A stretch of 64,000 bases of DNA, taken from NCBI GenBank assembly GCA_965240325.2, contig OZ251226.1, forward strand, positions 248,001-312,000, in the 5' to 3' direction. Below, piece after piece: positions 44,282-64,000 of this stretch (position 1 is its first letter; the number at the start of each line of letters is the position of its first letter). A program made the position numbers and the translations under genes. The notes below the pieces were generated by a model. That model was not told the DNA's origin. It ran no database searches and worked only from the letters and a program-made list of their open reading frames with translations. This DNA is from Rebecca billardiae RCC1528. Its lineage: Eukaryota; Protista; Haptophyta.

Positions 44282-44873
44282 TGTGTCGGAGGGGTTGATG
44301 AGCCCGAAACGACTGAGCGAAATCGGTTCGCGCGAACCGATTCAGCTCAGTCGTTTCGGGCTCATCAACCCCTCCGACACAACCGTAAAGTCACCTGTTC
44401 GAATCCAGCGACCGACACGCAGGCATATAAGAACTCTTGGCCTTTCACGCGAAGTGCTTTCGACCTCGCGAGAGCCTCGCGGCTCCGGGGGGAATGAAAA
44501 GCGAGGCGGAGTCGGCAAAAACGAACGAAAAAAGAGGGGAGCACGAAGAAGATGACCACGACAAAAAGCCAGACGACAGAAAACGAGCACGGTCCGCGAC
44601 GCGCAACCTCCGGGTATAGCGCGCGCTGCGCGCCGCGCTGCAACTTGGGTTGTCGCAGCACTCGCGGCAGTTGCTGTCGATGTCGATGTCATCGTACAGA
44701 CCATCGACATCTTCACCCCTGAGCGGCAGGCATAATTATGGGTCCTCGGGGTAGTGTCCAACAGGGGACTTACGGTTATGTCGGAGGGGTTGATGAGCCC
44801 GAAACGACTGAGCTAAATCGGTTCGCGCAAACCGATTTAGCTCAGTCGTTTCGGGCTCATCAACCCCTCCGAC
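44282..44873. mobile_element. element with ~115-bp TIRs whose outer ~94 bp are self-palindromic
   Basis: palindromes 44282-44381 and 44780-44873; inner flanks AACCGTAAAGTCACCTGTT / AACAGGGGACTTACGGTT are inverted to each other. Confidence 0.75.
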
Positions 44874-44914
44874 CGCGTACAGTACGGCTATTAAGCATCA
44901 AGTAGTTATTATAT

Positions 44915-46570
44915 GTGGCGTTATAGGGAACCTATAACTGAGTGTCTATGAGCGACGCCAAGAATCCGGCTCGCACGGCATTCCTGCGTTGTCCTGTGCG
45001 CACCGCCGCGCGCAGGAGTCCTGGTGCGCTGCCAATCTGGCCCACAGCGGCGCACCTGCAGGACTCGGTTGGTTACCGCTCACATCGGATCGATCAGGCT
45101 TCGCTCTCGGGGGCGCCATGGGGCTGCTCACGACGAAGGCGCCGAGCTGGGCAAGGGAATCGCCTGCATCGGGCACTGCCGGGTGCACGCTCCGCTGCAG
45201 GAGGTGCACCGCAGTCGCCGCAGCCCCTCTGCTCGGTAAGGTCGCTGGCTGTCTGTGTGGCCCGGCTCCCCGCCTGATCGTTCGGCGGCGCGACGTCATC
45301 ATCTGTCTTCGCCGCGTCGCCCCTCATGCAATGGTCTCTTGCTCTCGCCGCTGTCGCGTCAACCCGCACGCTTCATCGTTTGAGATACGCGCTCGCCTCG
45401 CGCCCGTGCGTCGCGCGGGTGCGGCGCACTCTGACGCGTGTCTGCTCGCCGCGCGTCGCGATCGATCGTGCGCGCGCGGCCGCGCAGTCCTCGTCTCTTC
45501 TATTTCTAAACGGGATTCATCAACGACTACTTGGACGCCCGCTCCAACTTATAAACGGGACTCGCGGGCGCCCTCTCGACCTCGGGCAGCAGCTCAACCG
45601 CCACGCCGCTGCCAGCGCCCGCCGTCGTTCGTTGCTCAAATCCCAACATAGCTAACCTGATCGTTCCATGATTGATCATTGTGGTCTGTCTACTCCACGA
45701 CGCCGCGCGCCGCGACCATCCAGCTCCAGAGTCCATTCGTACCCGACGCCTTGTACGAGCCGGGCATGGCGGAGTGGCTAGACGTGGCGTTATAGGGAAC
45801 CTATAACTGAGTGTCTATGAGCGACGCCAAGAATCCGGCTCGCACGGCATTCCTGCGTTGTCCTGTGCGCACCGCCGCGCGCAGGAGTCCTGGTGCGCTG
45901 CCAATCTGGCCCACAGCGGCGCACCTGCAGGACTCGGTTGGTTACCGCTCACATCGGATCGATCAGGCTTCGCTCTCGGGGGCGCCATGGGGCTGCTCAC
46001 GACGAAGGCGCCGAGCTGGGCAAGGGAATCGCCTGCATCGGGCACTGCCGGGTGCACGCTCCGCTGCAGGAGGTGCACCGCAGTCGCCGCAGCCCCTCTG
46101 CTCGGTAAGGTCGCTGGCTGTCTGTGTGGCCCGGCTCCCCGCCTGATCGTTCGGCGGCGCGACGTCATCATCTGTCTTCGCCGCGTCGCCCCTCATGCAA
46201 TGGTCTCTTGCTCTCGCCGCTGTCGCGTCAACCCGCACGCTTCATCGTTTGCCCGCCCGCCCACCCTCGGCCTCTGGCGGATATGGAAGCACTGCAGTGT
46301 CAGCGAGCCATCAGCCTTAATCGACCTTGCTCAGTGACTGACGACTCGCGGGCGCCCTCTCGACCTCGGGCAGCAGCTCAACCGCCACGCCGCTGCCAGC
46401 GCCCGCCGTCGTTCGTTGCTCAAATCCCAACATAGCTAACCTGATCGTTCCATGATTGATCATTGTGGTCTGTCTACTCCACGACGCCGCGCGCCGCGAC
46501 CATCCAGCTCCAGAGTCCATTCGTACCCGACGCCTTGTACGAGCCGGGCATGGCGGAGTGATGGCTAGAC
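44915..46570 (+). mobile_element. miniature split-direct-repeat element A-x-B-A-y-B, family 2
   Basis: A 44915-45382 = 45784-46251; B 45559-45783 = 46343-46570; junction CTAGAC|GTGGCG; AT flanks. Confidence 0.8.
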
Positions 46571-46719
46571 ATATATATATATAGCAGTTAGCAGTAGTCG
46601 TATGCCACATAATCGGCGCCGGCCCGCCGTGGTGCCACTGGCCCGATGAGAGCAGGGCTCAGATGACAGAGTCACTGAGAGTCAGATGACAGCTACACGG
46701 AAGGCAGACTCAGGCTCGC

Positions 46720-48264
46720 TCAGACGCTGAGAATCACCGGCATCATCATCGACATCAACGCGGATGACCCCGACGCAGTAGCCGACGCTGCACGTGTGCT
46801 GCGATTGCTGCTCAGGTCAGATGCGGCTGTACGGCCCATCTGCTGCCACGCGAGGCCAGGGTCGGCGCCCTGCGTGAGGACGGCAGCCGACGGCCAGTCG
46901 ATGGCTGGCGCGTGCGCATGCGTGCGCTGCGCGCCGAGGGCTCGCCCCGACACGTCGAGCAGCCGCGCGAGCGCTGCCGCGCGAGTGCCGTTGGCGCGGT
47001 CTGACGGACCCGTGGTCCCATCGGGCTGCGCGTCGCTCGCCCAGGGTGCCCCCGTGCACGGCCAGATGTCGTCATGCGGGCACTCGCCCTCGTGGAAGCG
47101 CTCCTGCTCGAAGAGCCACTCCTGCAGCCGGTGCCAGCACCGCGTCTTGTGCCGCGCCGCCGAGCCGCCGATCGATGAGCTGTCGCCGATGTGGAAGAAG
47201 AGGCTCCAGCGGAAGGCGTGGATGCGGCGGCCGGCGTGGTGCGCGGCGGCGGCGCGGTACTTGGAGCGCAACCAGCGGTACGCGAGGTGGTCGGGCGGCG
47301 CCTTCGGCAGCGCGTTGTCCGGGAGCGCCGCCGGGTCCCCCAGGAACTGTGCGAGTGCGCGCACGTCCGCGCCGCCATGCAGTATCACTCCATTCAGGCC
47401 GTACGACACCCGGACTGCGGCCCACGCCGGCCGGCGGAGCTCGGCGCGCCAGCCGCGGCCGGCGTACAGGCTCGCCTTCGCCACGGCGTACGCCATCGCG
47501 CCCACCGCGCCCGGACACGCCAGCCAGTCGTCCTCCAGCAGCGCGACGAAGGGTGCGAGCTGCGCTGCGTCGAACGCGAGGAGCATGCGCGACACGTCTG
47601 CAGTCTGCCGCTGGACCGGGGTGGTCTCGATGGGCGGCTGCCGCGGCGCGCGCACGGCGGCGCGCTCGCCCTCCAGGCGGCGCAGCCAGTACACCGCGCT
47701 GCCGAGAGGATGGCGCCCGGGTGCGTACCGCGCGCGCGCGCGCTCCCATGCCGGGTGCGGCGCGCTCTGGTTGCCAGCGCGGAACACTGCGACGCACATC
47801 GGAGGCTGGGTGCCCAACGCGCCGTCGGCCGAGCTGGGCATCTGCGCCAGGAGCGAATCTAGAGTGCGCTCAAGGTATGACGAGGGCGCGCGCGAAGGGT
47901 CCTCCGCGAGGCTCGCGCAGCTGTTCCCCGCGCGCCCACAGTCGATTTTCCGAGGGGCGCTTGGCATGATGCAGCACAGCCAGTGTGGGAATGAGGACGC
48001 AGCCGTGTCGGCCGTCGCGTGCAGGGTTGAAGCATTCGGGCCGGCCAAGGGCGCGTCCTGCAGCCCACCGTCGAGCGCAGCGGCAAGATCTCTCCTGCCC
48101 CCATGCCGTGCTGACGCCGCGTTCGGCGGGTGTGCGCGGCGGCCCGCGCTGCCAGCAGCGCTGGGTGGCGCATGAGACGGGCGGTCGTGCACCGTGTGAA
48201 AGTAGATCACGAGCGCAAGCTGGGCGAGACATGCCAGCGCGCCAATGAGACGTGCGTACCGCAT
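46720..48264 (-). CDS. type II membrane glycosyltransferase, GT54/MGAT4-like
   Basis: N-terminal TM; SYLERTLDSL, LLEDD, GLNGVIL, PPDHL, LFFHIGDSSS. Confidence 0.65.
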   Translation of the reverse strand: MRYARLIGALACLAQLALVIYFHTVHDRPSHAPPSAAGSAGRRAHPPNAASARHGGRRDLAAALDGGLQDAPLAGPNASTLHATADTAASSFPHWLCCIMPSAPRKIDCGRAGNSCASLAEDPSRAPSSYLERTLDSLLAQMPSSADGALGTQPPMCVAVFRAGNQSAPHPAWERARARYAPGRHPLGSAVYWLRRLEGERAAVRAPRQPPIETTPVQRQTADVSRMLLAFDAAQLAPFVALLEDDWLACPGAVGAMAYAVAKASLYAGRGWRAELRRPAWAAVRVSYGLNGVILHGGADVRALAQFLGDPAALPDNALPKAPPDHLAYRWLRSKYRAAAAHHAGRRIHAFRWSLFFHIGDSSSIGGSAARHKTRCWHRLQEWLFEQERFHEGECPHDDIWPCTGAPWASDAQPDGTTGPSDRANGTRAAALARLLDVSGRALGAQRTHAHAPAIDWPSAAVLTQGADPGLAWQQMGRTAASDLSSNRSTRAASATASGSSALMSMMMPVILSV

Positions 48265-48570
48265 GCATGACCCATGCGCGCAGCTTGACAAACCGTCGGC
48301 CGTCGTCAGGACCGCGCTGCGCGGCAGGCTCCTGGCCGCCGTCAAGTTGTGTTCACGAGACGCCAAGCGGAGGCGCCAATAATCTGATGCGCGCGGCGAT
48401 GGGGCGACCTCGTGACGACTGAGCAACCCGGCGGCGGAGCTTGGGCAGACTTGGAGTGCTTTCTTCAGCAAACTGCATGCACCCAGTTGCCGATTTCATG
48501 CTGCGGTTAAGCAGTCGCTCCGTGACCTTTCCGCACGTGTATTGTAGTGTCCGCGCGCGTGAATAGCGCG

Positions 48571-49416
48571 ATGAATGTGCGCATGCTGCTGGGGCTATGC
48601 GGTGCGCTTGCCGCCCACGCCGCCCACGTGGACAAGGTCTTCTTCATCGGGCAGGGCTCGACGGGCACGCGCACGCTCTCGGAGATGATGCGCGCGCGGG
48701 GGTACAAGACGGTGCACAACATTTGCCCCGACGCGAGGACGCCTTGGAACCACCCGGTGCTTCACCACGATAAGCACCATCGATGCCTCGTCGAGAACCA
48801 GGCGTTCCTCGACCACGGCGATCTGCTCGACCTGAACTGGCTTGCCGCGGAGTATCACAACGCGCGCTTTGTTCTGAACGTCCGCCCTCTGCTGAATTGG
48901 GTGGTCAGTCGCGTCGACCACGCGGCGAACAAGCGGCTCGAGCTGGGCTGCTCGCCGTACGGGACAAAGCGGACGTGCCCGAAGCTCCAACACATGCCCG
49001 ACAACTCGAACATCACCGTCGCGCACTGGATCAAGCGCGTCGCTGCGATGCAGTCCAAGGCGCTGCGCATGTTCAGCACCTCGTGGTCGCTGCGCCAGCG
49101 CTTCGTCGTCATTGGTCTGGAGACGATGAAGCCGTGCGATGTGGATAAGCTCCTGGATTGGGTACTGCGGCACGACTACTCCAACGCGCGCACCACACCA
49201 CACCTGATCCACAACGCCGCCGAGCTGCCGCCGGGTGGCCGAGCGCACTGCTCGCGCGCCGCCGCTTCGACACACACGGGCGTGGTCTCGCATCCGCCGC
49301 GCACGACGCGGCGAATCCACTCGCTGCTCCGTGCGTTTGGCTGCGGCCAGTCGATGTGGAACGACGTGATGTACATGCGGTGCGCAGCCAAGATACCACG
49401 CTCGATGCTGCACTGA
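48571..49416 (+). CDS. secreted Sulfotransfer_4-like P-loop protein, paralog 1
   Basis: signal peptide; KVFFIGQGSTGTRTL..RGY..H, AFLDH, Y.NARFVLNVRP..W..S. Confidence 0.7.
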   Translation: MNVRMLLGLCGALAAHAAHVDKVFFIGQGSTGTRTLSEMMRARGYKTVHNICPDARTPWNHPVLHHDKHHRCLVENQAFLDHGDLLDLNWLAAEYHNARFVLNVRPLLNWVVSRVDHAANKRLELGCSPYGTKRTCPKLQHMPDNSNITVAHWIKRVAAMQSKALRMFSTSWSLRQRFVVIGLETMKPCDVDKLLDWVLRHDYSNARTTPHLIHNAAELPPGGRAHCSRAAASTHTGVVSHPPRTTRRIHSLLRAFGCGQSMWNDVMYMRCAAKIPRSMLH

Positions 49417-49626
49417 CTGATTTGCAGAGCCAATAGCCAGAGTCCGGCTAGCTACATGTAACTGTGATGTAAGATAGTCTACTGTAAGAATATATATATG
49501 TGTATATACCTATATATTATATTAATATATATACTAAATAAAGAGTATAAAGAGACGCCGATCACCATCTTCAGATCTACTCATCATCAGTCATTCAGTG
49601 GCATATTACATAACTGCTATATATAT

Positions 49627-51285
49627 GTCTAGCCACTCCGCCATGCCCGGCTCGTACAAGGCGTCGGGTACGAATGGACTCTGGAGCTGGATGGTCGCGG
49701 CGCGCGGCGTCGTGGAGTAGACAGACCACAATGATCAATCATGGAACGATCAGGTTAGCTATGTTGGGATTTGAGCAACGAACGACAGCGGGCGCTGGCA
49801 GCGGCGTGGCGGTTGAGCTGCTGCCCGAGGTCGAGAGGGCGCCCGCGAGTCGTCAGTCACTGAGCAAGGTCGATTAAGGCTGATGGCTCGCTGACACTGC
49901 AGTGCTTCCATATCCGCCAGAGGCCGAGGGTGGGCGGGCGGGCAAACGATGAAGCGTGCGGGTTGACGCGACAGCGGCGAGAGCAAGAGACCATTGCATG
50001 AGGGGCGACGCGGCGAAGACAGATGATGACGTCGCGCCGCCGAACGATCAGGCGGGGAGCCGGGCCACACAGACAGCCAGCGACCTTACCGAGCAGAGGG
50101 GCTGCGGCGACTGCGGTGCACCTCCTGCAGCGGAGCGTGCACCCGGCAGTGCCCGATGCAGGCGATTCCCTTGCCCAGCTCGGCGCCTTCGTCGTGAGCA
50201 GCCCCATGGCGCCCCCGAGAGTGAAGCCTGATCGATCCGATGTGAGCGGTAACCAACCGAGTCCTGCAGGTGCGCCGCTGTGGGCCAGATTGGCAGCGCA
50301 CCAGGACTCCGCCTGCGCGCGGCGGTGCGCACAGGACAACGCAGGAATGCCGTGCGAGCCGGATTCTTGGCGTCGCTCATAGACACTCAGTTATAGGTTC
50401 CCTATAACGCCACGTCTAGCCACTCCGCCATGCCCGGCTCGTACAAGGCGTCGGGTACGAATGGACTCTGGAGCTGGATGGTCGCGGCGCGCGGCGTCGT
50501 GGAGTAGACAGACCACAATGATCAATCATGGAACGATCAGGTTAGCTATGTTGGGATTTGAGCAACGAACGACAGCGGGCGCTGGCAGCGGCGTGGCGGT
50601 TGAGCTGCTGCCCGAGGTCGAGAGGGCGCCCGCGAGTCCCGTTTATAAGTTGGAGCGGGCGTCCAAGTAGTCGTTGATGAATCCCGTTTAGAAATAGAAG
50701 AGACGAGGACTGCGCGGCCGCGCGCGCACGATCGATCGCGACGCGCGGCGAGCAGACACGCGTCAGAGTGCGCCGCACCCGCGCGACGCACGGGCGCGAG
50801 GCGAGCGCGTATCTCAAACGATGAAGCGTGCGGGTTGACGCGACAGCGGCGAGAGCAAGAGACCATTGCATGAGGGGCGACGCGGCGAAGACAGATGATG
50901 ACGTCGCGCCGCCGAACGATCAGGCGGGGAGCCGGGCCACACAGACAGCCAGCGACCTTACCGAGCAGAGGGGCTGCGGCGACTGCGGTGCACCTCCTGC
51001 AGCGGAGCGTGCACCCGGCAGTGCCCGATGCAGGCGATTCCCTTGCCCAGCTCGGCGCCTTCGTCGTGAGCAGCCCCATGGCGCCCCCGAGAGTGAAGCC
51101 TGATCGATCCGATGTGAGCGGTAACCAACCGAGTCCTGCAGGTGCGCCGCTGTGGGCCAGATTGGCAGCGCACCAGGACTCCGCCTGCGCGCGGCGGTGC
51201 GCACAGGACAACGCAGGAATGCCGTGCGAGCCGGATTCTTGGCGTCGCTCATAGACACTCAGTTATAGGTTCCCTATAACGCCAC
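49627..51285 (-). mobile_element. second, inverted copy of split-direct-repeat family 2
   Basis: reverse complement of 44915-46570; internal junction at 50413/50414. Confidence 0.85.
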
Positions 51286-51297
51286 ATATATGAATAT

Positions 51298-53620
51298 GAT
51301 CGGCTCACGCCGATCTTCGGGTAGTACTATAAACGCCAACGAAGTTGAGGGCAAACGGCCCTAGCTAGTTCCGCGCGTGGCGCTGCGTGCGCCAGCTGCG
51401 CGCACCCGCTGCGCCCGCGTTGAGCATGCGAGCGCCGCGCCTGCGAGCACACGCGGCGGCTCGACACAGCCGCACGGCAGTGTCGCTCGTGCGCCTGCCC
51501 GTGATCATCAGTCTCAGCTCTGAGGCGCGCGCTCAAGGAGGGCTGCGGCCGGGCCGAGCGCGATCTGCGCAGACGGTACAGCCCGTGGTGGCTCATGGGC
51601 AGCCCGAGCCCAAAGCCCGCCTCCGCCATCCGCGTCACAGCCGGCCGCTCCAGCCGAGGTCTCGCGTGCTGCGCTGCAGCCGTGCTAGGCCGAACCGGAC
51701 GCCCGCCGAGCCGAAGCCGGGCACGCGGCTGATGAGCAGTGGTAGCCAGGCGAAGCCGTCGTCGCGGGCGAAGCTGCGCTGGGTGATGCGGCTGAGCAGT
51801 CGGGTTATACAGATTAGTTACAGTAAACGCGGGCCCGGGCTCACTGGAATCACACCGCGGGCCGGCGACCGCGCAGCCGGGAGCAGGCCCGGGCGCGCAA
51901 TAACTATGAGCAAAATATCCGGCGCCAGAAAAGCGGCGGCGGCGCTGGCATGCGCCTAGCGGCACTGCCCTGGTACAGTCTACGCTCCCCTGGCCAGCCC
52001 AGCCGCCGCCGGGGCCATACCAGGCCACCACGGCGAAGCGCGCGCTCCCGCGGAACACCTCGGCCCGACACTGGCGGATCACCCGGCAGTCGTCAGCCGT
52101 CTGACGCGTAGCGCGTAGTCGACAAATGGCTGCTGACGGCGTAAAATCGGCCTGCGCGGCGGATGAAACGGCTGAAAGGCGAGGCCACGACGCCACCCAA
52201 CTGGCGCACGCGCGTGCGGCCGGCGGTGCGGCGCAGCTCGGTCACTGCCACCGCTCCCGCGGGCTGCTCACTCACTCACGCCGAGCGCTGTGTTTGACCA
52301 CGAGACAGTGCCGTCGCCCGCGATGGCAGCTGCAAGCTGATCGTGCGCTCGCCGCTCCCAGACGATGCAGCAGCCACGGACGTCACACACGGCACGGGGC
52401 GAGTGTGCCTCGAGCCTGCACCACATCTTCGCCCGCCCTGCCCTCGCAAGGCGATGCAGACTGCAGAGGGCTGTCGCAGTCGTCTGGCGCAAGCAGCTCA
52501 CACGCCGCGCACCGCGCGCGTGGCCGTGATGGGTCGGCACAGCCCAGTCAAAGACACGGCATCGTATCGCCCTCTGGCCGCCAGCAGCATCACCTCTGCC
52601 GTCTGCGAGCGACTCGTAGTTGCAGCAGCAGCCGCCAAGAGCTTGCACAAATAAACTGCGCAACGGGCGCGCCGACGCGCGTGGACGCGGGTCGGCACCG
52701 GGGCGGGGCGCGAGGGGGGAAAGCGGCACGAATGCGATGCCGACGGCCGTTGGGACCCACCGCAGCCGCGCGCACCTGCGCTGAGTCTGTCGGATTGAAC
52801 GATCGTGCGACGGCGGCCTACATGGGCAGTGGCGGCTTTCTGCGCCTTCCGGTTCGGAGCCTGCTGCCCGCCCGTCAATCAGCGCGAGCTGCGCAAGGCC
52901 GTACCATGATATAGTATTAATCATGAAGGGAGATATTATGAATATTTGTCCGCTCAAGTTTATCGTTCATATTCGTCAAGCTCTCCCGGACGCGCCGGTA
53001 TTAAATGGGAGAGAATCAAGGGTCGTGCGTGAAGCGCGGTAGAAATTCTTATGCTCATGAGATTTTCAGGCCCGTCAATGCGGGTGGCAATCCATTCTTG
53101 CAATCACAAGAATGGATTGCCACCCGCATTGACGTCGTATCAGTAGATGACCAAAAGTATATCAGCAAGAGTAGGTTGATAACCGTATGATACCAGGGCG
53201 CGCGGGAACGTCGATTCAAGCTACCCGCGCAATACCATATCGCGTCGCTTTGATGAATCTGAGGAGTGAACAGCTATCCAGAGAATTAGTTCGATATCGC
53301 ACCTTTTTTATGGTCAGTTCAACACACGAATATTGACTATCAGAAAGGTATCAGAGATGACTTCGTCCTATTTGATTCCGATTTCTTCTATTACTTACTA
53401 TCCAAAGATTAAGGGACAGTACAAACGCAATCATGAGCAGCGATATGGGGTCTCTATGCTGCGGTTTCACACCTAAATCCACCTACAATAAAAATCCCCC
53501 AAATCCTGCGCGCATCCTCTTTTTTGATTTTGCGGAGCACGTGCGCCGCCCCCCCCCCCCCCCCCCCCCCCGGCTTTCGCTCACGCTCAGACCTTTCGCC
53601 TTTCGGGGGGGCCGTGCGCC
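51298..53620 (-). mobile_element. hairpin-ended element (beta 5' end, type-2 3' hairpin)
   Basis: 5' GGCGCACG..CGAAAGGTCTGAGCGTGAG shared with 57861; 3' hairpin GATCGGC-GTGA-GCCGATC + AT; 51377-51480 homologous to 13975-14075; boundary pairing is inferred. Confidence 0.55.
53074..53133. repeat. perfect 27-bp-stem hairpin
   Basis: GTCAATGCGGGTGGCAATCCATTCTTG-CAATCA-CAAGAATGGATTGCCACCCGCATTGAC. Confidence 0.9.
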
Positions 53621-55099
53621 ATAAGTCGTACAGTCTTTTTAAAAAATAATGTGGCGATGAGTATAACTTTGTAAGCTACTCGCTGCCGATGGCTAGGATT
53701 CTAGCATTTCTAGCGCTGAGATCGGCGGTTGGAACCCCTGGAGCCTGGAGGCAGGGCGTGCAGTCGGGCTGTCGGCACTGGGTACGTAGCTATGCGCAGC
53801 CTGCTGCCCTGCTGTCAGTGTCACTGTCTGTCTGCTGTCACAGAGCCATCATAGAGTAGCAGTGTCACTGTCAGACAGTCAGTGTCATTACGCTCTCACA
53901 CTCAGACTCAGACGTTCAGTCTCTGCCTCTGCCTACAGTCTAGGCCGCTCTGAGCTCTGAGTCTGACGACTCGGTCGTCCAGTAGCTACAGTTTACGGTA
54001 AGACGAACAAAACGACCGGCGCAGGCAGGTGAGGGGCGCGTTGATGGCAGTACCGTACCACTGTACTCTATACATTTTACTAACTCTAACTATGTTTTAA
54101 CGTGCACACTAAAAGAGACCGGCGCAGGCAGGTGGGGGGCGCGTTGCCGCACCAATCATCGAGGGCGGCCATTGCAGGCAAGCGGCCGCCCCGCGCTCGG
54201 AGGCACGCGCTCGAGAGCGCGCTCTGACACCACACGGTGAGGGTGCTGCACCTGGATGTTGTATCCCAGTGCGTGTAGTCCCTCAAAATTTTAAGCCTCC
54301 CGACATCATTGTTCGCCATATATCCGCGCAGCAAAGCAGCGGCGCGCCACCATACCGTAGGGGCGTACTAAACGATAGGGGCGTACTAAACTTAACGACT
54401 CCCGAATGCACAAAAGCAGGGGGTCAGCTGAATTAATGCAGCTCACACGACCGCGCTCCACGCCGAAAACCAGCCCGTATCTGCCCGCCGGCTGGCTCGT
54501 GCATGCGCACCGACTGCCGGGCGCATCGACACCGTGGCGCACAGAGCGTGGGTGCCGCGGCCGGGTGGGTATGTGCTGACGCGGCTGGGCGGTGGGCCTG
54601 GTGCATGCGCTGGCTGATGGGCTCTGCCCGGGTCGGCGCGTAGCGGGCGTGCGGGCTGAGACAAAGTCGTGCCGGCTGCAGCCGGCGACTAAATTGTGGG
54701 TCCCTATCTAGTATCTCCTTACCGGCCGAAGGCTGGACTCCCAGTAAGCTAGTCCCACCCTTCAGCTTTTTATAACTATGTGCGAATCAAGGCCTATATG
54801 GCCGGCCATGACCGATGATGATATGGGCCACTAGGCGGCCATGGCCGATGGTTAGCGGTCGACCAGCCATCTCTGGCCGATGGGTATTGGCCGATGGCCG
54901 TCCGGCGGCCGGAATGTGGGAGGCCGCGCCCGGGGCGGCACCGGGCCACGGCGCCGGCGCGTGGCCGCGTGCGCACGCCGCGCGGGCTGCAGCACTGTCC
55001 GACTCTGCACGGTCGTAGTCCGAGAGGGCGGCCTCGGGGCTCGGCCGACCCAACCGGTGGACTTGTTGAGCCCCAGTGGCGGTCTCGACCGAGCTTGGC

Positions 55100-55101
<2 letters not shown>

Positions 55102-55149
<48 letters not shown>
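55102..55149. repeat. (TG)n microsatellite
   Basis: direct reading. Confidence 0.95.
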
Positions 55150-55151
<2 letters not shown>

Positions 55152-55734
55152 GTTGCTGATATCAGTTACAGATGACTACTGTATGTCTATTGTATTCTGC
55201 GCGCCGGCCCGGAGAGTGAAGGACGCGAGGTGCAGGCGGCGAGCCCGGCGCCGACTCCGACGAGGGCGAGTCAGCGGCCGCACCCGCGCCCGCGACCGCG
55301 CCCACGCCCGCGCCCATTACCCCTACTTCTGCCACGGCACGCGCTTGCACTGCCGCAGCAGCGCTGCTGCATCGTCTGAGAGTACGTCTGCCGACGCGGC
55401 GACTGCGGCAGCCTCTCAGCGGCGAGCGGACGAGCGGTGGCTGCAGCAGCACAGTAGTACGTCGGCTGCAAGCAGCTTATTCTGCGACGAGATCATGCCC
55501 AGACAGAGTCAAGGCGACCTCGTTGGGGAGTACGTTCTGCCTTCGGAGTGGTGAATACTATAATGCGCCGAAAAATAAAATAAAGTATGAATGAATGAAT
55601 ATATATATATATATATATTAACGACGTGGTATGCAACGGGCAGGCGTCAGAGTATACATATCGTCCTTATTTCATTTATTCGTCGTAGTCGGCCACTGGC
55701 CGATGAACGGGCGAAAGTGGGCATCCTGTAATAA

Positions 55735-55845
55735 TAAATTCCCCTTTATAACGGGCTCCGGGTGATCAGACTGGCGGCCGAAGCCTCCAGCCCTACCCTG
55801 GCCAGCCCCCAACCAACCACCACCCTCACCCAAACTCAAACCACT
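55735..55845 (+). repeat. TTATAACGGGCT-family copy
   Basis: matches 31931-32044. Confidence 0.8.
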
Positions 55846-55930
55846 GTGGCCGACGGGTTGGCCGACGCCCGTCGAGGCTTGCTTGATTCGCACACCTTAG
55901 CTTCAGCACCGTTTTTGCTGTATGTATATA

Positions 55931-56875
55931 TCTCTTCATGGGGCGTTGAAATTGGCGTTCCAAGCCAGTGACAGGTCGATTCAGCGACCTCGAATTGGGT
56001 ACACATCGATCTTCATCTGTCACATATGTCACGTCACGGCCGTTACATGACAGGTATTGGTCGAAAATCCGAAGGGTGGGATCCCACCCTTCAGTTCAGA
56101 ACCGCCTTCACCTACGCTGACACATTGAGGCGCTCTGGTCAGCCAGAAACGCGTGCTACGAGTGCAGCGTGGCCAGGAAGCATCGCGTACTACTCCCTGG
56201 CTTACGTCAGCCCATGTCGGACGCCCTGAGTAGCAGTTCGCTTCATCGCGCACGGGTGCGCGCGCACGTAGCCGCTGGCCGACGTGGTGAGCGCGTCGGG
56301 CGGCCGCGCGCGCGCACGAATCGAGTGTCAGCAGCAGCACATGCTCGCGCTCAGCGGGGGAACATGTTTGCTCACTAGGCGCCTGGATCAGCAGGCTAGC
56401 AGCCGTGGTAGACGTTGCAGCTGATGGGGTGGAAGGCTCGACCGCACGCCTGGCAACAGGACGGCGCGAGCGACCGCAACCACCGCCCCGCCTGCGTCCG
56501 CGAGGGGGCTGAGCACCTTGACCTTACGCGTCGCCCTGGCTGGGCGTTGGGTCAGATGTATCTATCCTACTCCCAGCGTCGCGCGCGGGCTCTGAGCCGG
56601 TTGGCGTCTTAACGGTCTCCTCGTCCGTGCAGTTGTTGCCGCATCATCGAGGGAATCACGACCGTCGGCCAGATCGTCGAGCTCGAGCGGGCCAAATTCG
56701 TCCTCTGATCAGATGGCAGCCTATCGGGTCAATCGTCTACCTCGTCACCCATACCGACCGTACCGACCCTTCCGCTCGCCACTCTGAGCCTTGCGCCGTC
56801 GTCAGAGCTCGCGCGCACGGGCGCCATCGCGAAGGGTGGGACCCCACCCTTCCGGCCCGCCCGCCGGAAAAGAGA
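55931..56875. mobile_element. TCTCTT...AAGAGA TA-flanked element with GAAG-N14-CTTC palindromes
   Basis: TA|TCTCTT and AAGAGA|TA; GAAGGGTGGGA(T/C)CCCACCCTTC at 56071 and 56831. Confidence 0.6.
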
Positions 56876-56935
56876 TATATTGGTACTCCCACCAAAGTCG
56901 CACCGCCAAGGCCGGCCGCGGCGGAACCGCACGCC

Positions 56936-57853
56936 ATGCGCAACCGGCGGCACCCGGCGTCCACGCCACCGCACATCCACGCTTGGCGCCTGATCATGGT
57001 ATTGGGACTGTGCTGCACGCATGCTGCCCACGCAGCCCACGTGGACAAGGTCTTCTTCATCGGGCAGGGCTCGACGGGCACGCGCACGCTCGCAGAGATG
57101 ATGCGCGCGCGCGGCTACAAAGCAGTGCACAACTTTTGCCCAGGTGGTGGGAAGACGCCGTGGGACCACGCGGTGAAGCACCACAACAAGCACAACCCAT
57201 GTCTGAAGGACAACAACGCCTTCCTCGACCACGGCGATCTGGTCGATCTTCCTTGGCTTACTGCCACGTATCCAAGCGCGCGCTTTGTGCTCAACGTGCG
57301 CCCTCTGCTGAATTGGGTGGTCAGCCGCGTCGACCATGTGGCGATTTTGCGGGAGAAACTGGGCTGTCCACCGTATGGCCTGAGACAGACGTGCCCGCAG
57401 CTCGACCACATGCCCGACAACTCGAACATCACTGTCGCGAACTGGATCAAGCGCGTCGCTGCGATGCAGCGCAGAGCTCTGCATATGTTCAGCAATTCGC
57501 GGTCGCTGCGGCAGCGCTTCGTCATCATCGGCCTCGAGACGACGTCGCCCTGCGACGTGGACAAACTCTTGGACTGGGTTCTGCGCGATCAGCCCTTGAA
57601 CACACGCCAAACGGCACGGCTCGTCAGGCAAGCTGCCGATCTGCCCGGTGGAGGTGAGGCACGATGCACGAACGCGTCCGCTGAGACGCATGCAGGGGTT
57701 GTTTGTCTCGCACCCGCAGCGCACAACGACCCGAATACGGTCTCTCTTGCGGTCGTTTGGCTGCGGCCCGTCGATGTGGGACGACGTGCTGTACATTCAA
57801 TGTGCAGACAAGATCCCGCGCTCGATGCTGCACTGATTAATTCTACCCAATAA
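56936..57853 (+). CDS. Sulfotransfer_4-like paralog 2 with C-terminal frameshift (possible pseudogene)
   Basis: TTGT duplication at 57699-57706; ancestral C-terminus SHPQRTT...RSMLH continues in another frame to 57836. Confidence 0.7.
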   Translation: MRNRRHPASTPPHIHAWRLIMVLGLCCTHAAHAAHVDKVFFIGQGSTGTRTLAEMMRARGYKAVHNFCPGGGKTPWDHAVKHHNKHNPCLKDNNAFLDHGDLVDLPWLTATYPSARFVLNVRPLLNWVVSRVDHVAILREKLGCPPYGLRQTCPQLDHMPDNSNITVANWIKRVAAMQRRALHMFSNSRSLRQRFVIIGLETTSPCDVDKLLDWVLRDQPLNTRQTARLVRQAADLPGGGEARCTNASAETHAGVVCLAPAAHNDPNTVSLAVVWLRPVDVGRRAVHSMCRQDPALDAALINSTQ

Positions 57854-57860
57854 TAATTAT

Positions 57861-58920
57861 GGCGCACGCCCCCCCCCCCCCGAAACTCGAAAGGTCTGAG
57901 CGTGAGTATAGCACATAACACCAGCCGTGTGTTCGAACATTCCGTCATAGTAAGATGCCTGTAAATTGTAAGAACCTGAAACAGCTCGCCAACCATAGAA
58001 AAGAGAGGTTAGGTCGGCTTTTATGTCGCTTGAAGTAAAGTATTATGCCGGCATCTGAACTCATGAACCGTCGCTTCTCAGTGGTGGATATCATCAGGTG
58101 AAGCCCCTTTGTTAAGCCCCTTGATTACTCTGTCATCTAACTACTGCTGATGCGACGTCAATGCCGAATGCTGGGTGGCAGTCCATTCTTGTATATTGCA
58201 GAGGTAAGATCTCTTTCAACCCCCATAGGGTGCCACTGGTATCTTTGATTATTCTTCGAAGCCAAACGCCGTTTTTTGAGCTGCCCACTTAGGGGCGAAG
58301 TGCGCTCAAAAAAATATACTACCCAGTTTTGTGCGCGCGCGCGCGCCGGGTGAGTGAGCACGCACGGGCTCAGCCTCGGACTCGCTGGCTGGCCGCCGCT
58401 GCTTCGAGGCCGACGCGGCAGAGGAGGCGGCGGGCGAGCACGGTGGCGCGGTGGAGCAGGCGCGCACGCGCGGCGGCAGGCGCGACCCGCCGCTCGCCTC
58501 GTTCCACCCCGAGCTCCGCGCTCGGTCTCGCCTCTCGGACTCGGTGCGCGGCTGCGCAGCGCCGTGAGCGCACGGGCCGGGGGCGGGGCCGCAGCAGTGG
58601 CGCGCGCTCTCGCTCTGCCGGCACGAGGCGCGCCGGCTGAGCGACCAGCGGCCCGTCGTCGAGCGCATGGCGCAGCGCGAGCACCTCAAGGCCGAGGTGC
58701 GCCCGCACGCGCGCACGCGCCGGCCCGCGCCGCGCGGCGCCTCTCGGAGTCTCGCTCGCCCTGCGCGCGCGCGCCGCCGCCCGGCCGGGCCGCTTCTCCG
58801 CGCGGCCCGCGGCGACAGTCCTCATCGGCCCGCCATGTCAGACTGAGACAGCAGCCGATGGAGGGTGCACCGCGGGCCCCTAACTACGTTGGTTCTACGG
58901 AAGAACCGCGGAACGCGGTC
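57861..58920 (+). mobile_element. hairpin-ended element (beta 5' end, type-1 3' end)
   Basis: 5' end matches 53620(rc), 58133-58192 matches 53105-53150(rc); 3' end matches 14860-14918; AT flanks. Confidence 0.65.
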
Positions 58921-59094
58921 ATTAACTAGTGACTTTATTCATTATTCATAGTGTGACTGAGACACTGACCCCTGCGCCGCGGGGATGATACGTATACGAT
59001 AGAGTCGCGAACCAGCCAATCGCCAGTCTCACTGTCCATCAGGCCATCCCAGATCCCCCGGCAGCAGATAGCAGCAAGTCCCATTACTACTAAT

Positions 59095-60381
59095 GGCCCG
59101 CGGTGCAGGGCGGAGCGCGCAGCGTGGAGCCCGCACCAGCGGGCCCGAACCACGTTTCAAAAAGATCTTTGATCAAGAAAAAAGGGACGGGGCGAATAAA
59201 AAAGGGACGGGGGCGATTTTAATTTTTTAGGGCTGGCGGAGACCGAGTTTCGAGTTTTTGAGATCGCATAGAGAGGTCTATTAGGCCGAAAAACACCGCG
59301 TCCACGATATTCCCTAAGTAAAGTGCGCGCGATCTGGACGTCAGCCGGACGTGACTTTAGCGTAACGGTTCGTTACGAGCGAATCGTATTCGTCGTCCCG
59401 GATCGCGTGACGTCCGGACTGGGCCACATCCGGATCGTCGGAGGTGACGTGCCCCGGCACGAGTGGCGGATGCGGGACGGCGCCTGCACGTGCCTCCGGA
59501 CCCGCCTCCCGCTTGCTGCTCACGCAGTCAGCTGCGACCGTGGCGCATGATCGCAGAAGCAGTGCCGGCAGTACGGCCTGCATCAGCTAGCTAGTGCCGC
59601 GCCGTCGTGGCGCGCGCGGTACGCGGTTGCGCGTTTGCAGCGCGGCTCGCCGCTCGGCGACGGCACGCGCGTGCGGCTCAGGTGTGTCAAATGCGGTCTC
59701 GTCGGCGCGCTTTCGCCTGCCACCTCGTGCACCCGTGCCGCCAGTTTCATCGTCTTCATGAGGACTGCTGCTGCTGTCGCCATCCGCTCTCCATCACCCC
59801 GAGTCGCGCGGCGCGCGCGGTAGGCACTAGGCAGGGCGTACGGTCACTCACCCGTGCAACGGGTCAAGTGGCCAGAGTACGTCTGGTCGTTGGCTGGCAC
59901 GGGCCGCAGCGCTAAAGCACCCTGCTGTCACACCCGACTCCTTCAGTACTCCGAGCTCCGCGGCACGACTCACTCGGCACGATCGCGGACGGGTCGGATC
60001 CGAGCTGATCAGCCAGAGTTGGACACAGTTTGGCAGCTACTAGTTGTAATTCCGATGCCGATGGCACGATCGCGGACGGGTCGGATCCGAGCTGATCAGC
60101 CAGTTGGACATTTGGCAGCTAGTTGTCAGACGGGCGTCCGATTTGACGACCGGTGCCGGGTGCGGTCTCAGGTCCGCTGCTGTGATTGTGTGAAGTGTGA
60201 ATGAGTCTCGCGGTCGCGCAGGCGCCAGGCAGGGCGACGGTCGGACTAATAGCTTCAGTCATCTCAGAACCGACTTCAATTATTGGCGAACTGCCACTAC
60301 GGCGGAGAGCCGCGATTGCACGGCCACCGCGGGCCCCCAACTGCGTTGATTCTATGCAGAAAAGGACCGCGGAACGCGGTC
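59095..60381 (+). mobile_element. hairpin-ended element (alpha 5', type-1 3')
   Basis: near-identical inverted copy at 62010-63468; AT flanks. Confidence 0.85.
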
Positions 60382-60727
60382 ATATTCTATGATTTAAAGA
60401 CACAGGCACGAGGGCGCAGCTCTTACCTGATTCGTCTGTCGAAGTACTGAATGGAGTTAATGGAGGATGTCGGAGCGCGTTGGCCGCGGGTGAGGGAGTC
60501 GTCGTCCCCGATGCTGATCACACGGTCTGTCTGTCGGTCACGCGGAGGTAGCCGCCGGTAGGCGCCCAGGGATGCCGCTGTTTTTGCAGTCGTCGCCGGC
60601 CTTGGTCATCATGTCGTAGTTGCCAGCGTCGTCTTCCGAGGCTGTTCAAGTTGATGCCATAGTGCAGGTAGTGGATGTGGTCGCCCGGGCCGGTGTGCGC
60701 GGCCTAGTGGCCTTGCCGAGTTGAGGT

Positions 60728-60850
60728 CGAGTAGTCGCCCTTGCCGTTGAGGAAGTCGTCGTCCTTGCCGTTGAGGAAGTCGTCGCCCTGGCCGCAGAGG
60801 AAGTCGTCGCCCTTGCCGTTGAGGATGTCGTCGCCCTGGCCGCTGAGGAT
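60728..60850 (-). repeat. 24-bp tandem repeat encoding G(Q/K)GDD(F/I)LN-like units
   Basis: GQGDDILN GKGDDFLC GQGDDFLN GKDDDFLN GKGDY on the minus strand. Confidence 0.7.
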
Positions 60851-61111
60851 CAGGATGCCTGCGCTGCCCGACTGGGCGCACCTGGCGCGCCAGCGCCGCG
60901 CGCGGCTCTGGGCCAGCGACAACGGCGCGGCAGCAGCCAGAGCACGGGGGCTACCATGCAGTTTCTTTCCGTTTCTGAATAATTCACGTGACGACAGTTC
61001 ACAGACAGTTATTTGTACATGTGGATTCTGTACCCGGACCGCCGGGCCGGGAGGCCACCGGGCCCGGCGCGACGCGCGTGTGCGCGCAACCGGCGGCACC
61101 CGGCGTCGACG

Positions 61112-61984
61112 ATGCCACCGCACATCCACGCTTGGAGCCTGATCATGGTATTGGGAATGTGCTGCACGCATGCTGCCCACGCAGCCCACGTGGACGACAA
61201 GGTCTTCTTCATCGGGCAGGGCTCGACGGGCACGCGCACGCTCGCAGAGATGATGCGCGCGCGCGGCTACAAAGCAGTGCACAACTTTTGCCCAGGTGGT
61301 GGGAAGATGCCTTGGAGCCGCCCGGTCAAGCACCGCAACAAGCACCACCCGTGTCTCAAGGACAACAACGCCTTCCTCGACCATGGCGATCTGGTTGACC
61401 TCCGTTGGCTTACTGCCACATACCCAAGCGCGCGCTTTGTGCTCAACGTGCGCCCTCTGCTGAATTGGGTGGTCAGCCGCGTCGACCACGTGGCGAACTT
61501 GCGGGAGGAACTGGGCTGTCCACCGTATGGCCTGAGACAGACGTGCCCGCAGCTCGACCACATGCCCGACAACTCGAACATCACTGTCGCGCACTGGATC
61601 AAGCGCGTTGCTGCGATGCAGCGCAGAGCTCTGCATATGTTCAGCAATTCGCGGTCGCTGCGGCAGCGCTTCGTCATCATCGGCCTCGAGACGACGTCGC
61701 CCTGCGACGTGGACAAACTCTTGGACTGGGTTCTGCGCGATCAGCCCTTGAACAGACGCCAAACGGCACGGCTCGTCAGGCAAGCTGCCGATCTACCTGC
61801 TGGAGGTGAGGCACGATGCACGAACGCGTCCGCTGAGACGCATGCAGGGGTTGTCTCGCACCCGCAGCGCACAACGACCCGAATACATTCTCTCTTGCGG
61901 TCGTTTGGCTGCGGCCCGTCGATGTGGGACGACGTGCTGTACATTCAATGTGCAGACAAGATCCCGCGCTCGATGCTGCACTGA
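61112..61984 (+). CDS. Sulfotransfer_4-like paralog 3 (intact)
   Basis: highly similar to paralog 2, open to RSMLH stop. Confidence 0.75.
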   Translation: MPPHIHAWSLIMVLGMCCTHAAHAAHVDDKVFFIGQGSTGTRTLAEMMRARGYKAVHNFCPGGGKMPWSRPVKHRNKHHPCLKDNNAFLDHGDLVDLRWLTATYPSARFVLNVRPLLNWVVSRVDHVANLREELGCPPYGLRQTCPQLDHMPDNSNITVAHWIKRVAAMQRRALHMFSNSRSLRQRFVIIGLETTSPCDVDKLLDWVLRDQPLNRRQTARLVRQAADLPAGGEARCTNASAETHAGVVSHPQRTTTRIHSLLRSFGCGPSMWDDVLYIQCADKIPRSMLH

Positions 61985-62009
61985 TGATATATATACCCAA
62001 TATATATAT

Positions 62010-63468
62010 GACCGCGTTCCGCGGTCCTTTTCTGCATAGAATCAACGCAGTTGCGGAGTTGGGGGCCCGCGGTGGCCGTGCAATCGCGGCTCTCCGCCGT
62101 AGTGGCAGTTCGCCAGTTGAAGTCGGTTCTAAGATGACTGAAGCTATTACTAGTATTAGTCCGACCGTCGCCCTGATGCCTGCGCGACCGCGAGACTCAT
62201 TCACACTTCGATCACACAATATATATAATAATCACAGCAGCGGACCTGAGACCGCACCCGGCACCGGTCGTCAAATCGGACGTCCGTCTGACAACTAGCT
62301 GCCAAATGTCCAACTGGCTGATCAGCTCGGATCCGACCCGTCCGCGATCGTGCCATCGGCATCGGAATTACTACTAGTAGCTGCCAAACTGTGTCCAACT
62401 CTGGCTGATCAGCTCGGACCTGAGACCGCACCCGGCACCGGTCGTCAAATCGGACGTCCGTCTGACAACTAGCTGCCAAATGTCCAACTGGCTGATCAGC
62501 TCGGATCCGACCCGTCCGCGATCGTGCCATCGGCATCGGAATTACTACTAGTAGCTGCCAAACTGTGTCCAACTCTGGCTGATCAGCTCGGATCCGACGA
62601 CCCGTCCGCGATCGTGCCGAGTGAGTCGTGCCGCGGAGCTCGGAGTACTGAAGGAGTCGGGTGTGACAGCAGGGTGCTTTAGCGCTGCGGCCCGTGCCAG
62701 CCAACGACCAGACGTACTCTGGCCACTTGACCCGTTGCACGGGTGAGTGACCGTACGCCCTGCCTAGTGCCTACCGCGCGCGCCGCGCGACTCGGGGTGA
62801 TGGAGAGCGGATGGCGACAGCAGCAGCAGTCCTCATGAAGACGATGAAACTGGCGGCACGGGTGCACGAGGTGGCAGGCGAAAGCGCGCCGACGAGACCG
62901 CATTTGACACACCTGAGCCGCACGCGCGTGCCGTCGCCGAGCGGCGAGCGCCGTGCAAACGCGCAACCGTACCGCGCGCGCCACGACGGCGCGGCACTAG
63001 CTGATGCAGGCCGTACTGCCGGCACTGCTTCTGCGATCATGCGCCACGGTCGCAGCTGACTGCGTGAGCAGCAAGCGGGAGGCGGGTCCGGAGGCACGTG
63101 CAGGCGCCGTCCCGCATCCGGCGCCATCGTGCCGGGGCACGTCACCTCCGACGATCCGGATGTGGCCCAGTCCGGACGTCACGCGATCCGGGACGACGAA
63201 TACGATTCGCTCGTAACGAACCGTTACGCTAAAGTCACGTCCGGCTGACGTCCAGATCGCGCGCACTTTACTTAGGGAATATCGTGGACGCGGTGTTTTT
63301 CGGCCTAATAGACCTCTCTATGCGATCTCAAAAACTCGAAACTCGGTCTCCGCCAGCCCTAAAAATCGCCCCCCGTCCCTTTTTTCTTGATCAAAGATCT
63401 TTTTGAAACGTGGTTCGGGCCCGCTGGTGCGGGCTCCACGCTGCGCGCTCCGCCCTGCACCGCGGGCC
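62010..63468 (-). mobile_element. inverted copy of 59095-60381 with an extra internal ~175-bp duplication
   Basis: reverse-complement match; duplicated block 62242-62590. Confidence 0.85.
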
Positions 63469-64000
63469 ATAATAATTACTAGTTCGTTCGTTCATCAAGA
63501 ATCTCATCATCATTCATCACTTGATCTAGATGATAATTGCATGACGACGATTGACGAATCGTCAAACTCGCTGGACTATGGATCGCTCAAGTTTTTTTCG
63601 TACGTATTCAAACTGTCCCGGACGCGCCGGCACTCCGTGACTCTTCAGGATGAAAAACTTGTTAGTAACTTAGGAATGAAAAACATTACAATCAAACATG
63701 ATTACATCAGCGTTCGAGACCACGCTGATTGATGGCGCGTCTTTGTTTGAATCGACGCCTCAGCATCGGGGTCCCCACCTGCCGCCGAATGATCTCGACG
63801 CGCAGCGTGGAATCGAGCTGCGCCTCGCGCCAGCTCCCGGCGTAGGCCAAGTGCCATGCACCGCCCCGCCGTCAACCCGCGCTCGCGCCTCGCGCGCACG
63901 CGGATCCCGCGACTCATTGGTCGCGCCCGCCACTCGGTGGCGCTGCCAGCTGCGCCTCGCGTCAGCTGCAGACGTAGGCTCGGCGTCGCTGCGCCGCCTC

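Follow-up and report, generated by a model that had tools for sequence, protein, structure and literature searches.

Sulfotransferase genes framed by inverted mobile elements in the haptophyte Rebecca billardiae: a probable transposon hot spot over an older gene cluster

Introduction

Do mobile elements that frame a gene in inverted orientation also move that gene? The question is raised by a stretch of 19 kb in the haptophyte Rebecca billardiae RCC1528, in which three sulfotransferase paralogs (ST1, ST2 and ST3) follow one another, each with a mobile element on either side. It lies in a window of 64,000 nt (the whole stretch of DNA analysed, corresponding to 248001-312000 of contig C8, OZ251226.1), from whose first letter positions are counted here; the evidence is the sequence of one assembly, which comprises 72 Mb in 41 contigs. 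The initial annotation of the window described each paralog as bracketed by an inverted pair of related elements, with three families that are always inverted, and proposed composite-transposon-like cassettes, invertible segments or paired local insertion as explanations. Our analysis points in another direction: the 19-kb stretch is probably a transposon hot spot over an older tandem sulfotransferase cluster and contains no gene-moving cassette.

The elements are designated here as A copy 1 and A copy 2 (around ST1), B1 and B2 (around ST2), and C(+) and C(-), the left and the right copy of family C (around ST3); their coordinates are given in Table 1. P4 is an outlying paralog at C8:185838-186767. 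Letters followed by a contig number (e.g., C8) always refer to contigs.

Results and Discussion

Two inverted pairs and one pair of different elements

In a self-comparison, positions 44910-46579 match 51290-49618 in inverted orientation with 99.2% identity over 1,676 nt, so that the bracketing of ST1 by an inverted element pair holds. Besides ST1 (plus strand), the arms of this pair enclose a second gene on the minus strand (46720-48471). The bracketing of ST3 by an inverted pair of one family stands as well: 59093-60383 matches 63470-62008 in inverted orientation, with ungapped blocks of 100% identity (352, 239, 124 and 100 nt) split by indels, and the tandem duplication of C(-) is found at 62241-62588.

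ST2 does not conform to this scheme. B1 and B2 have in common only about 50 nt of the 5' terminus (84% identity), which is present 293 times in the genome, and one patch of ~57 nt (77%). Furthermore, they match different genomic repeat sets, the 3' end of B1 does not carry the 3' end motif of B2, and the two behave as different families. A same-family pair around this paralog, whose pairing the initial annotation had itself rated as weaker, is therefore not confirmed, and what remains of the proposed rule of three always inverted families is two real pairs (A and C), both of them inverted (p = 0.25).

Long inverted repeats may also be generated during assembly, either by fold-back chimeric reads, which can yield long identical inverted repeats, or by a haplotype mis-join producing false inverted duplicates. 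However, the centres between the arms are unique and non-palindromic, the arms carry diagnostic variants and indels, and their ends coincide with family termini that are found at dozens to hundreds of other loci. In addition, an assembly of 72 Mb in 41 contigs was presumably built from long reads, to which 1.7 kb would be no obstacle. An assembly artefact is thus barely conceivable.

The paralogs are older than the elements

If the framed genes were cargo of composite transposons, an inverted pair and the gene(s) between its arms would be mobilised as a unit, thereby spreading or amplifying sulfotransferase genes. Such a scenario has several attractive features: whole genes are framed by inverted copies that are 99-100% identical over long stretches; the reverse complement of the family C 5' end resembles the 3' end, so that an inverted copy could in principle provide a termination signal; and five matches to Helitron-like Rep are present in very long open frames of the genome. 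The relative ages of genes and elements, however, do not agree with it. ST2, ST3 and P4 are mutually 95-96% identical at the DNA level (ST3 has 96.4% identity to P4, the paralog nearest to it, 122 kb away, and 94.8% to ST2), whereas ST1 is 78% identical to ST3 in DNA and 73% in protein, as well as ~78% identical to ST2 and P4, and none of its relatives exceeds 73-78%. The main-burst copies of family C, in turn, deviate from their consensus at only 1-9 aligned positions (gap columns counted) in ~1,290 nt, and identity between the local A copies and those on other contigs is 98.1-100%. As the paralogs are 78-96% identical and the elements ~99-100% identical to dispersed copies, the paralogs must be far older than the element copies.

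The extent of the duplicated units leads to the same order of events. The homology among ST2, ST3 and P4 begins ~50-125 nt before the open reading frame (ORF) and ends ~20-40 nt past the stop codon, with no element inside. When B2 and C(-) are cut out in silico, the flanks of ST2 and ST3 align with each other across the junction, which identifies B2 and C(-) as simple insertions that entered homologous 3' flanks, only a few bases apart, after the duplication. The genes were duplicated first and the elements arrived afterwards.

The pattern does not recur at other paralogs, whose flanks the initial annotation had expected to be informative. P4 is naked: neither sequences of families A, B or C nor inverted repeats of at least 60 nt are present within 8-9 kb of it. 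None of the 13 other sulfotransferase loci (P4 and 12 distant ones) is bracketed by inverted repeats of at least 80 nt. No second copy of a cassette was found in the genome, ST1 and a private sequence patch of pair C (see below) each occurring here only, and the A marker list (45 copies) contains no other inverted A pair. A composite transposon would also require a different family for each paralog, two A copies that did not insert independently (as they did; see below), and an abnormal substrate, as the outer ends are both 5' in pairs A and C although these elements have unlike ends. With genes older than the elements, duplication units that exclude them, no second copy and unbracketed paralogs elsewhere, the proposal of composite-transposon-like cassettes is highly improbable, and the putative cassettes appear never to have moved as units.

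Pair A: independent insertions into (TA)n tracts

Family A is a protein-less element of 1.66 kb with the layout A1-x-B1A2-y-B2 (B1 and B2 here being parts of the layout), whose internal repeats of 468 nt (twice) and 218 nt (twice) are 100% identical within a copy, and it has no ORF matching Pfam. A copy 1 is 99.8-100% identical to copies on contigs C11, C7 and C1, which exceeds its match to A copy 2. Three markers, namely a GGC indel, a G/A site and a C/T site, separate the two local copies; at these, A copy 1 agrees with the copies on C11 and C7, and A copy 2 with those on C12 and C19. Whichever variant a copy carries, it carries it in both internal repeats, as regeneration of the repeats in every replication cycle would produce. 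Since the local copies carry different sublineage markers, each of them common to copies on other contigs, they are, judging from these markers, independent insertions of two sublineages into (TA)n tracts. Local inverted duplication was considered as the origin of pair A and rejected on the same grounds. All ten A copies examined have TA runs on both sides, and three of them are located inside long (TA)n arrays.

Pair C: a private patch common to both copies

The two copies of pair C contain a private patch of 139 nt (59262-59400 and 63189-63327) that is 100% identical between them but only 86-89% identical to the other C copies sampled. A 32-nt diagnostic pattern taken from this patch occurs at these two sites only when the 72 Mb are searched. 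Outside the patch, both local copies match the main-burst consensus, and several of the indels between them lie within ~45-70 nt of the patch. The common patch implies that either one copy was derived from the other or gene conversion has equalised them. An inverted segmental duplication was rejected, as on each of the four sides the identity stops right at the element terminus. Paired local insertion, one of the initially proposed explanations, thus finds support in pair C, whose patch is unique in the genome, and not in pair A with its different sublineages.

A possible, although rather doubtful, history of pair C is that of two independent insertions homogenised later by gene conversion, instead of a short-range re-insertion. 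Close inverted C pairs arise frequently by chance, and a main-burst consensus outside the patch, with indels within ~45-70 nt of it, would fit a conversion tract of limited length. This history nevertheless requires more events (two insertions, gain of the patch and conversion), and no donor of the patch was detected in the 13 sampled copies or by the genome-wide pattern search. As a more general possibility, hairpin-ended elements of this alga could re-insert within a few kb of their donor, often in inverted orientation, in which case C-ST3-C would represent a capture intermediate before its first move. We regard this as quite improbable; if it were true, such inverted pairs could start whole-gene capture or recurrent inversion, with the 5' reverse complement resembling the 3' end. 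Another inverted C pair, on contig C13 (1.8 kb apart, 3' ends inward), has fewer than two private variants in common, so that pair C does not establish local origin as a general rule.

The left copy, C(+), is flanked by two blocks (58985-59055 and 60384-60449) whose homologues lie downstream of P4 in reversed order; these two short blocks are the only homology between the P4 locus and the ST2-ST3 spacer. C(+) would accordingly mark a junction at which a former tandem array underwent a deletion or a transposon-associated rearrangement.

The arms of pairs A and C could also recombine with each other, flipping the segments 46571-49626 and 60384-62007, so that the assembly would represent one isomer. 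With a length of 1.3-1.7 kb, 99-100% identity in long blocks and a distance of 1.6-3 kb, they are good recombination substrates, and the conversion-like patch of pair C indicates that the arms may interact. Each segment, however, includes a whole gene together with its likely promoter, and flipping would not switch expression. Furthermore, the continuity of the C(-) flank with the ST2 flank implies that the present orientation is the one in place when C(-) inserted. We therefore consider invertible segments unlikely. For the ST3 segment, a past inversion as the last event was rejected, because across C(-) the flank continues in agreement with that of ST2.

AT-rich targets and abundance of the families

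The window has a GC content of ~65%, with sharp local dips. Between 42 and 64 kb, only 13 tracts have at least 14 A/T in 16 positions (334 nt in total, 1.5% of the sequence). Element interiors account for five of them, and five of the eight remaining tracts are in contact with an element end. One TA-rich stretch just past the stop codon is common to ST2 and ST3. The ancestral stop codon of ST2 is 21 nt from the edge of B2, and the stop codon of ST3 is 23 nt from the edge of C(-), close to the ~25 bp given in the initial annotation for these two cases. That AT-rich tracts are scarce and mostly touch element ends explains edges located 21-23 nt past stop codons. The 3' ends of ST2 and ST3 may have suffered damage from these insertions.

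The families are also numerous. The genome contains 1,084 copies of the C 5' end, 1,061 of the common 3' end, 293 of the B-type 5' motif and 45 of the marker for the y segment of family A. We compared adjacent same-family pairs at a distance of at most 5 kb with the expectation under uniform placement. For family C, ~78 close pairs are expected genome-wide. Contigs C1 and C3 (85 C copies, 9.6 Mb) contain eight close pairs (3.7 expected), four direct and four inverted, which extrapolates to ~100 pairs in the genome, about half of them inverted. For B-type 5' ends, ~6 close pairs are expected genome-wide, and six are present among the first 100 matches listed. With 1,084 C copies and close pairs being common, the families are in large part abundant enough for inverted neighbours to arise by chance, a possibility that the initial annotation had itself raised. 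Family A forms four close pairs, three of which are direct tandem-type arrays, the local pair being the sole inverted one; if only (TA)>=4 tracts (~2.6 per 10 kb) are allowed as targets and the copies are 1-3 tracts apart, ~0.1-0.3 pairs are expected. The window itself contains five common 3' ends versus 0.94 expected and is thus a local hot spot.

How the arrangement may have arisen

The following scenario would account for these observations. First, small GC-rich sulfotransferase genes would have formed a tandem cluster. Young protein-less families would then have invaded it, A into (TA)n tracts and B1, B2 and C at AT in AT-rich spots. At ~65% GC, AT-rich tracts are rare and would be almost confined to the short spacers past gene ends. 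With targets only in these spacers, every insertion would adjoin a gene, and the invaded genes would become flanked. One C copy would be the daughter of the other by short-range re-insertion, or gene conversion would have carried the patch across. The inverted orientation appears to be without function.

Several observations weigh against this scenario. Under uniform placement, a family A pair within 5 kb is expected only ~0.14 times genome-wide, and A, C and B-type pairs side by side are unlikely. The local clustering is observed, but the preference for this spot is unexplained. For C(+), no clean empty site was found. Furthermore, the inner flanks of pair A (46571-46608 and 49590-49626) both consist of (TA)n followed by GCAGTTA and, a few bases on, by TATGCCAC, a combination unique in the 72-Mb genome; independent insertion may account for it only if it is partly a target preference. 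Finally, the assignment of B1, B2 and C to one superfamily (see below) is based on their termini only.

The flank motif of pair A may be a motif of the target site, the relic of an inverted repeat or a product of chance. The GCAGTTA 7-mer has the same position in both flanks, immediately after the TA run, and CAGTTA is present within 25 nt in three of those six A copies, out of ten examined, in which the TA run is short enough for the flank to be read. A long terminal inverted repeat around 46571-49626 is conceivable, although without the TA run the inner flanks give a local alignment score of 20, within the range of shuffled sequences (mean 17.6, maximum 24). There is also a loose similarity between the motif and the family A 5' end read in reverse complement.

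Comparison with known elements

B1, B2 and C have the 5' terminus ATGGC(C/G)... and a 3' terminus consisting of a stem-loop of 6-7 bp followed by AT. The 3' hairpins of C, B2 and B1 (6- to 7-bp stems located 2-5 nt from the end) have z-scores of -2.5 to -4.5. Family C possesses a strong hairpin at its 5' end too, and its ends show a ~9-nt mirror (ATGGCCCGCGG versus CCGCGG...GGTCAT); in B-type 5' ends no significant hairpin was detected, and a mirror of B-type ends is not convincing. Ten C copies have AT-rich flanks and no target duplication beyond AT (AT being either duplicated or split, both of which fit).

In these properties B1, B2 and C resemble a hairpin-ended, Helitron2-like superfamily. 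Non-autonomous elements of the Helitron2/Helentron type include FoHeli of Fusarium and DINE/HINE (PMC5148889). Similarities to them are the lack of coding capacity, the terminal 3' stem-loop, the AT-rich sites, and mosaic bodies with common end modules, along with the presence of Rep-like genes in the genome; the absence of a target duplication beyond AT may be a further one. The GAA or GTGA loop of the stem-loop is like that of FoHeli termini (PMC5148889), and family C additionally has the strong 5' hairpin and a 5' end that may partly mirror the 3' region. In contrast, the ends are TGG...TCA, inserted between A and T, instead of the canonical TC...CTRR; the target differs from the TT or TTTT listed for Helitron2/Helentrons (PMC5148889); and the B-type 5' ends are without a significant hairpin. 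Five matches to Helitron_like_N, with identical scores in four of the five, were found in open frames of 2,600-3,640 aa (C39:342498, C7:282420, C13:616682, C23:65118 and C33:783174), which suggests a young, possibly active autonomous rolling-circle element.

B1, whose 3' terminus has a 7-bp hairpin with AT after it, lies 12 nt from A copy 2. The 3' module of B2 (58342-58922, 580 nt) is a high-copy sequence (1,223 candidates at a first look) that ends in the common hairpin, whereas for its low-GC portion of ~470 nt no repeat was found in the genome. The GC content of 57920-58330 is ~45%, and the 5' half of B2 may be a captured fragment.

Family A belongs to a different type. Split direct repeats and the absence of target-site duplications are traits of DIRS/Ngaro/PAT-like tyrosine-recombinase retroelements. 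Family A resembles these in its A1-x-B1A2-y-B2 structure with repeats identical within a copy, in the lack of a target-site duplication and in its tandem extensions. It differs in its length of just 1.66 kb, the absence of any protein and the strictly (TA)n insertion.

With bacterial composite transposons and eukaryotic Pack-type elements, the locus has in common that two copies of one element frame cargo genes. Unlike in these systems, nothing indicates that the unit has moved or that a second copy exists, the cargo is older than its flanks, and the flanking copies inserted independently in the case of pair A and are local duplicates in that of pair C.

Genes and further features of the window

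The Sulfotransfer_4 domain is matched by three ORFs of the region (48547-49416, 56627-57853 and 61013-61984). ST2 and ST3 pass the curated Pfam cut-off of 22.8 bits; ST1 is below it, yet its protein is 73% identical to that of ST3. In the DNA alignment with ST3, P4 and ST1, ST2 has four extra nucleotides near 57700 (57690-57705), by which its protein match is divided between two frames and the last ~45 codons are out of frame. ST2 is thus probably a pseudogene or carries a new C-terminus. Upstream of ST3, a tandem array of five 24-nt units (60706-60849) corresponds to an 8-residue repeat encoded on the minus strand in a 90-aa ORF (60609-60881). On contig C30, a 1.5-kb palindrome (~1115040-1116566, 97% identical to its own reverse complement) is located ~650 nt downstream of a distant sulfotransferase paralog.

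The gene divergent from ST1 had been annotated as GT54. It is a real conserved gene with homologues that are 40-50% identical in metagenomes as well as a pelagophyte hypothetical protein, but the GT54 label is unconfirmed: Pfam gave no match, even at E <= 1, and the Atlas provides only a lead to MGAT4/MGAT2/GNT-I-like (GlcNAc-transferase-like) clusters, with a haptophyte cluster as the nearest one. The relatives of the proteins of the region are algal and metagenomic sequences only; for the sulfotransferase, two unnamed proteins were matched. Between 53700 and 54334, the minus-strand reading is interrupted by stop codons. No tRNA genes were found in the window, which contains a (GT)24 microsatellite.

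A copy 1 has, at a distance of 41 nt, an element of 590 bp (44284-44873) as its neighbour, each end of which is a palindrome of ~95-120 nt (the ends being ~95-97% alike). Nesting of families A and C also occurs at other loci: one C copy is located within the 5' end of an A-like element, and the 5' end of another C copy directly adjoins an A copy. C3:112000-120000 contains two copies of each family, with the A copies arranged head to head across ATATAT.

Table 1. Sulfotransferase paralogs, neighbouring gene and mobile elements in the 19-kb stretch (positions within the window)
Feature	Position	Strand	Characteristics
A copy 1	44915-46570	+	non-coding; split-direct-repeat layout; (TA)n on flanks
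Conserved protein gene	46720-48471	-	divergent from ST1; metagenome homologues
ST1	48547-49416	+	Sulfotransfer_4, E 2.6e-4, 21.4 bits (slightly below the 22.8-bit cut-off)
A copy 2	49627-51285	-	inverted relative to copy 1 and 99.4% identical to it
B1	51298-53624	-	mosaic, of the putative hairpin-ended superfamily; 95% full-length copy at C8:996482, many partial matches
ST2	56894-57836	+	Sulfotransfer_4, E 3.8e-7, 30.6 bits; frameshifted
B2	57857-58922	+	B-type 5' terminus; ~470 nt of low GC; 580-nt 3' module
C(+), family C copy 1	59093-60383	+	non-coding; hairpin at each end; at a putative rearrangement breakpoint
ST3	61013-61984	+	Sulfotransfer_4, E 7.7e-7, 29.6 bits; ORF intact
C(-), family C copy 2	62008-63470	-	inverted; 174-nt internal tandem duplication; simple insertion

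Implications

The private patch of pair C provides a marker with which, in Helitron2-like elements, short-range re-insertion may be told from gene conversion. Where GC content is as high as in this genome, rare AT tracts near genes would funnel the insertions of abundant young families towards gene ends. A striking framing of genes by inverted mobile elements can thus arise without any cassette function.

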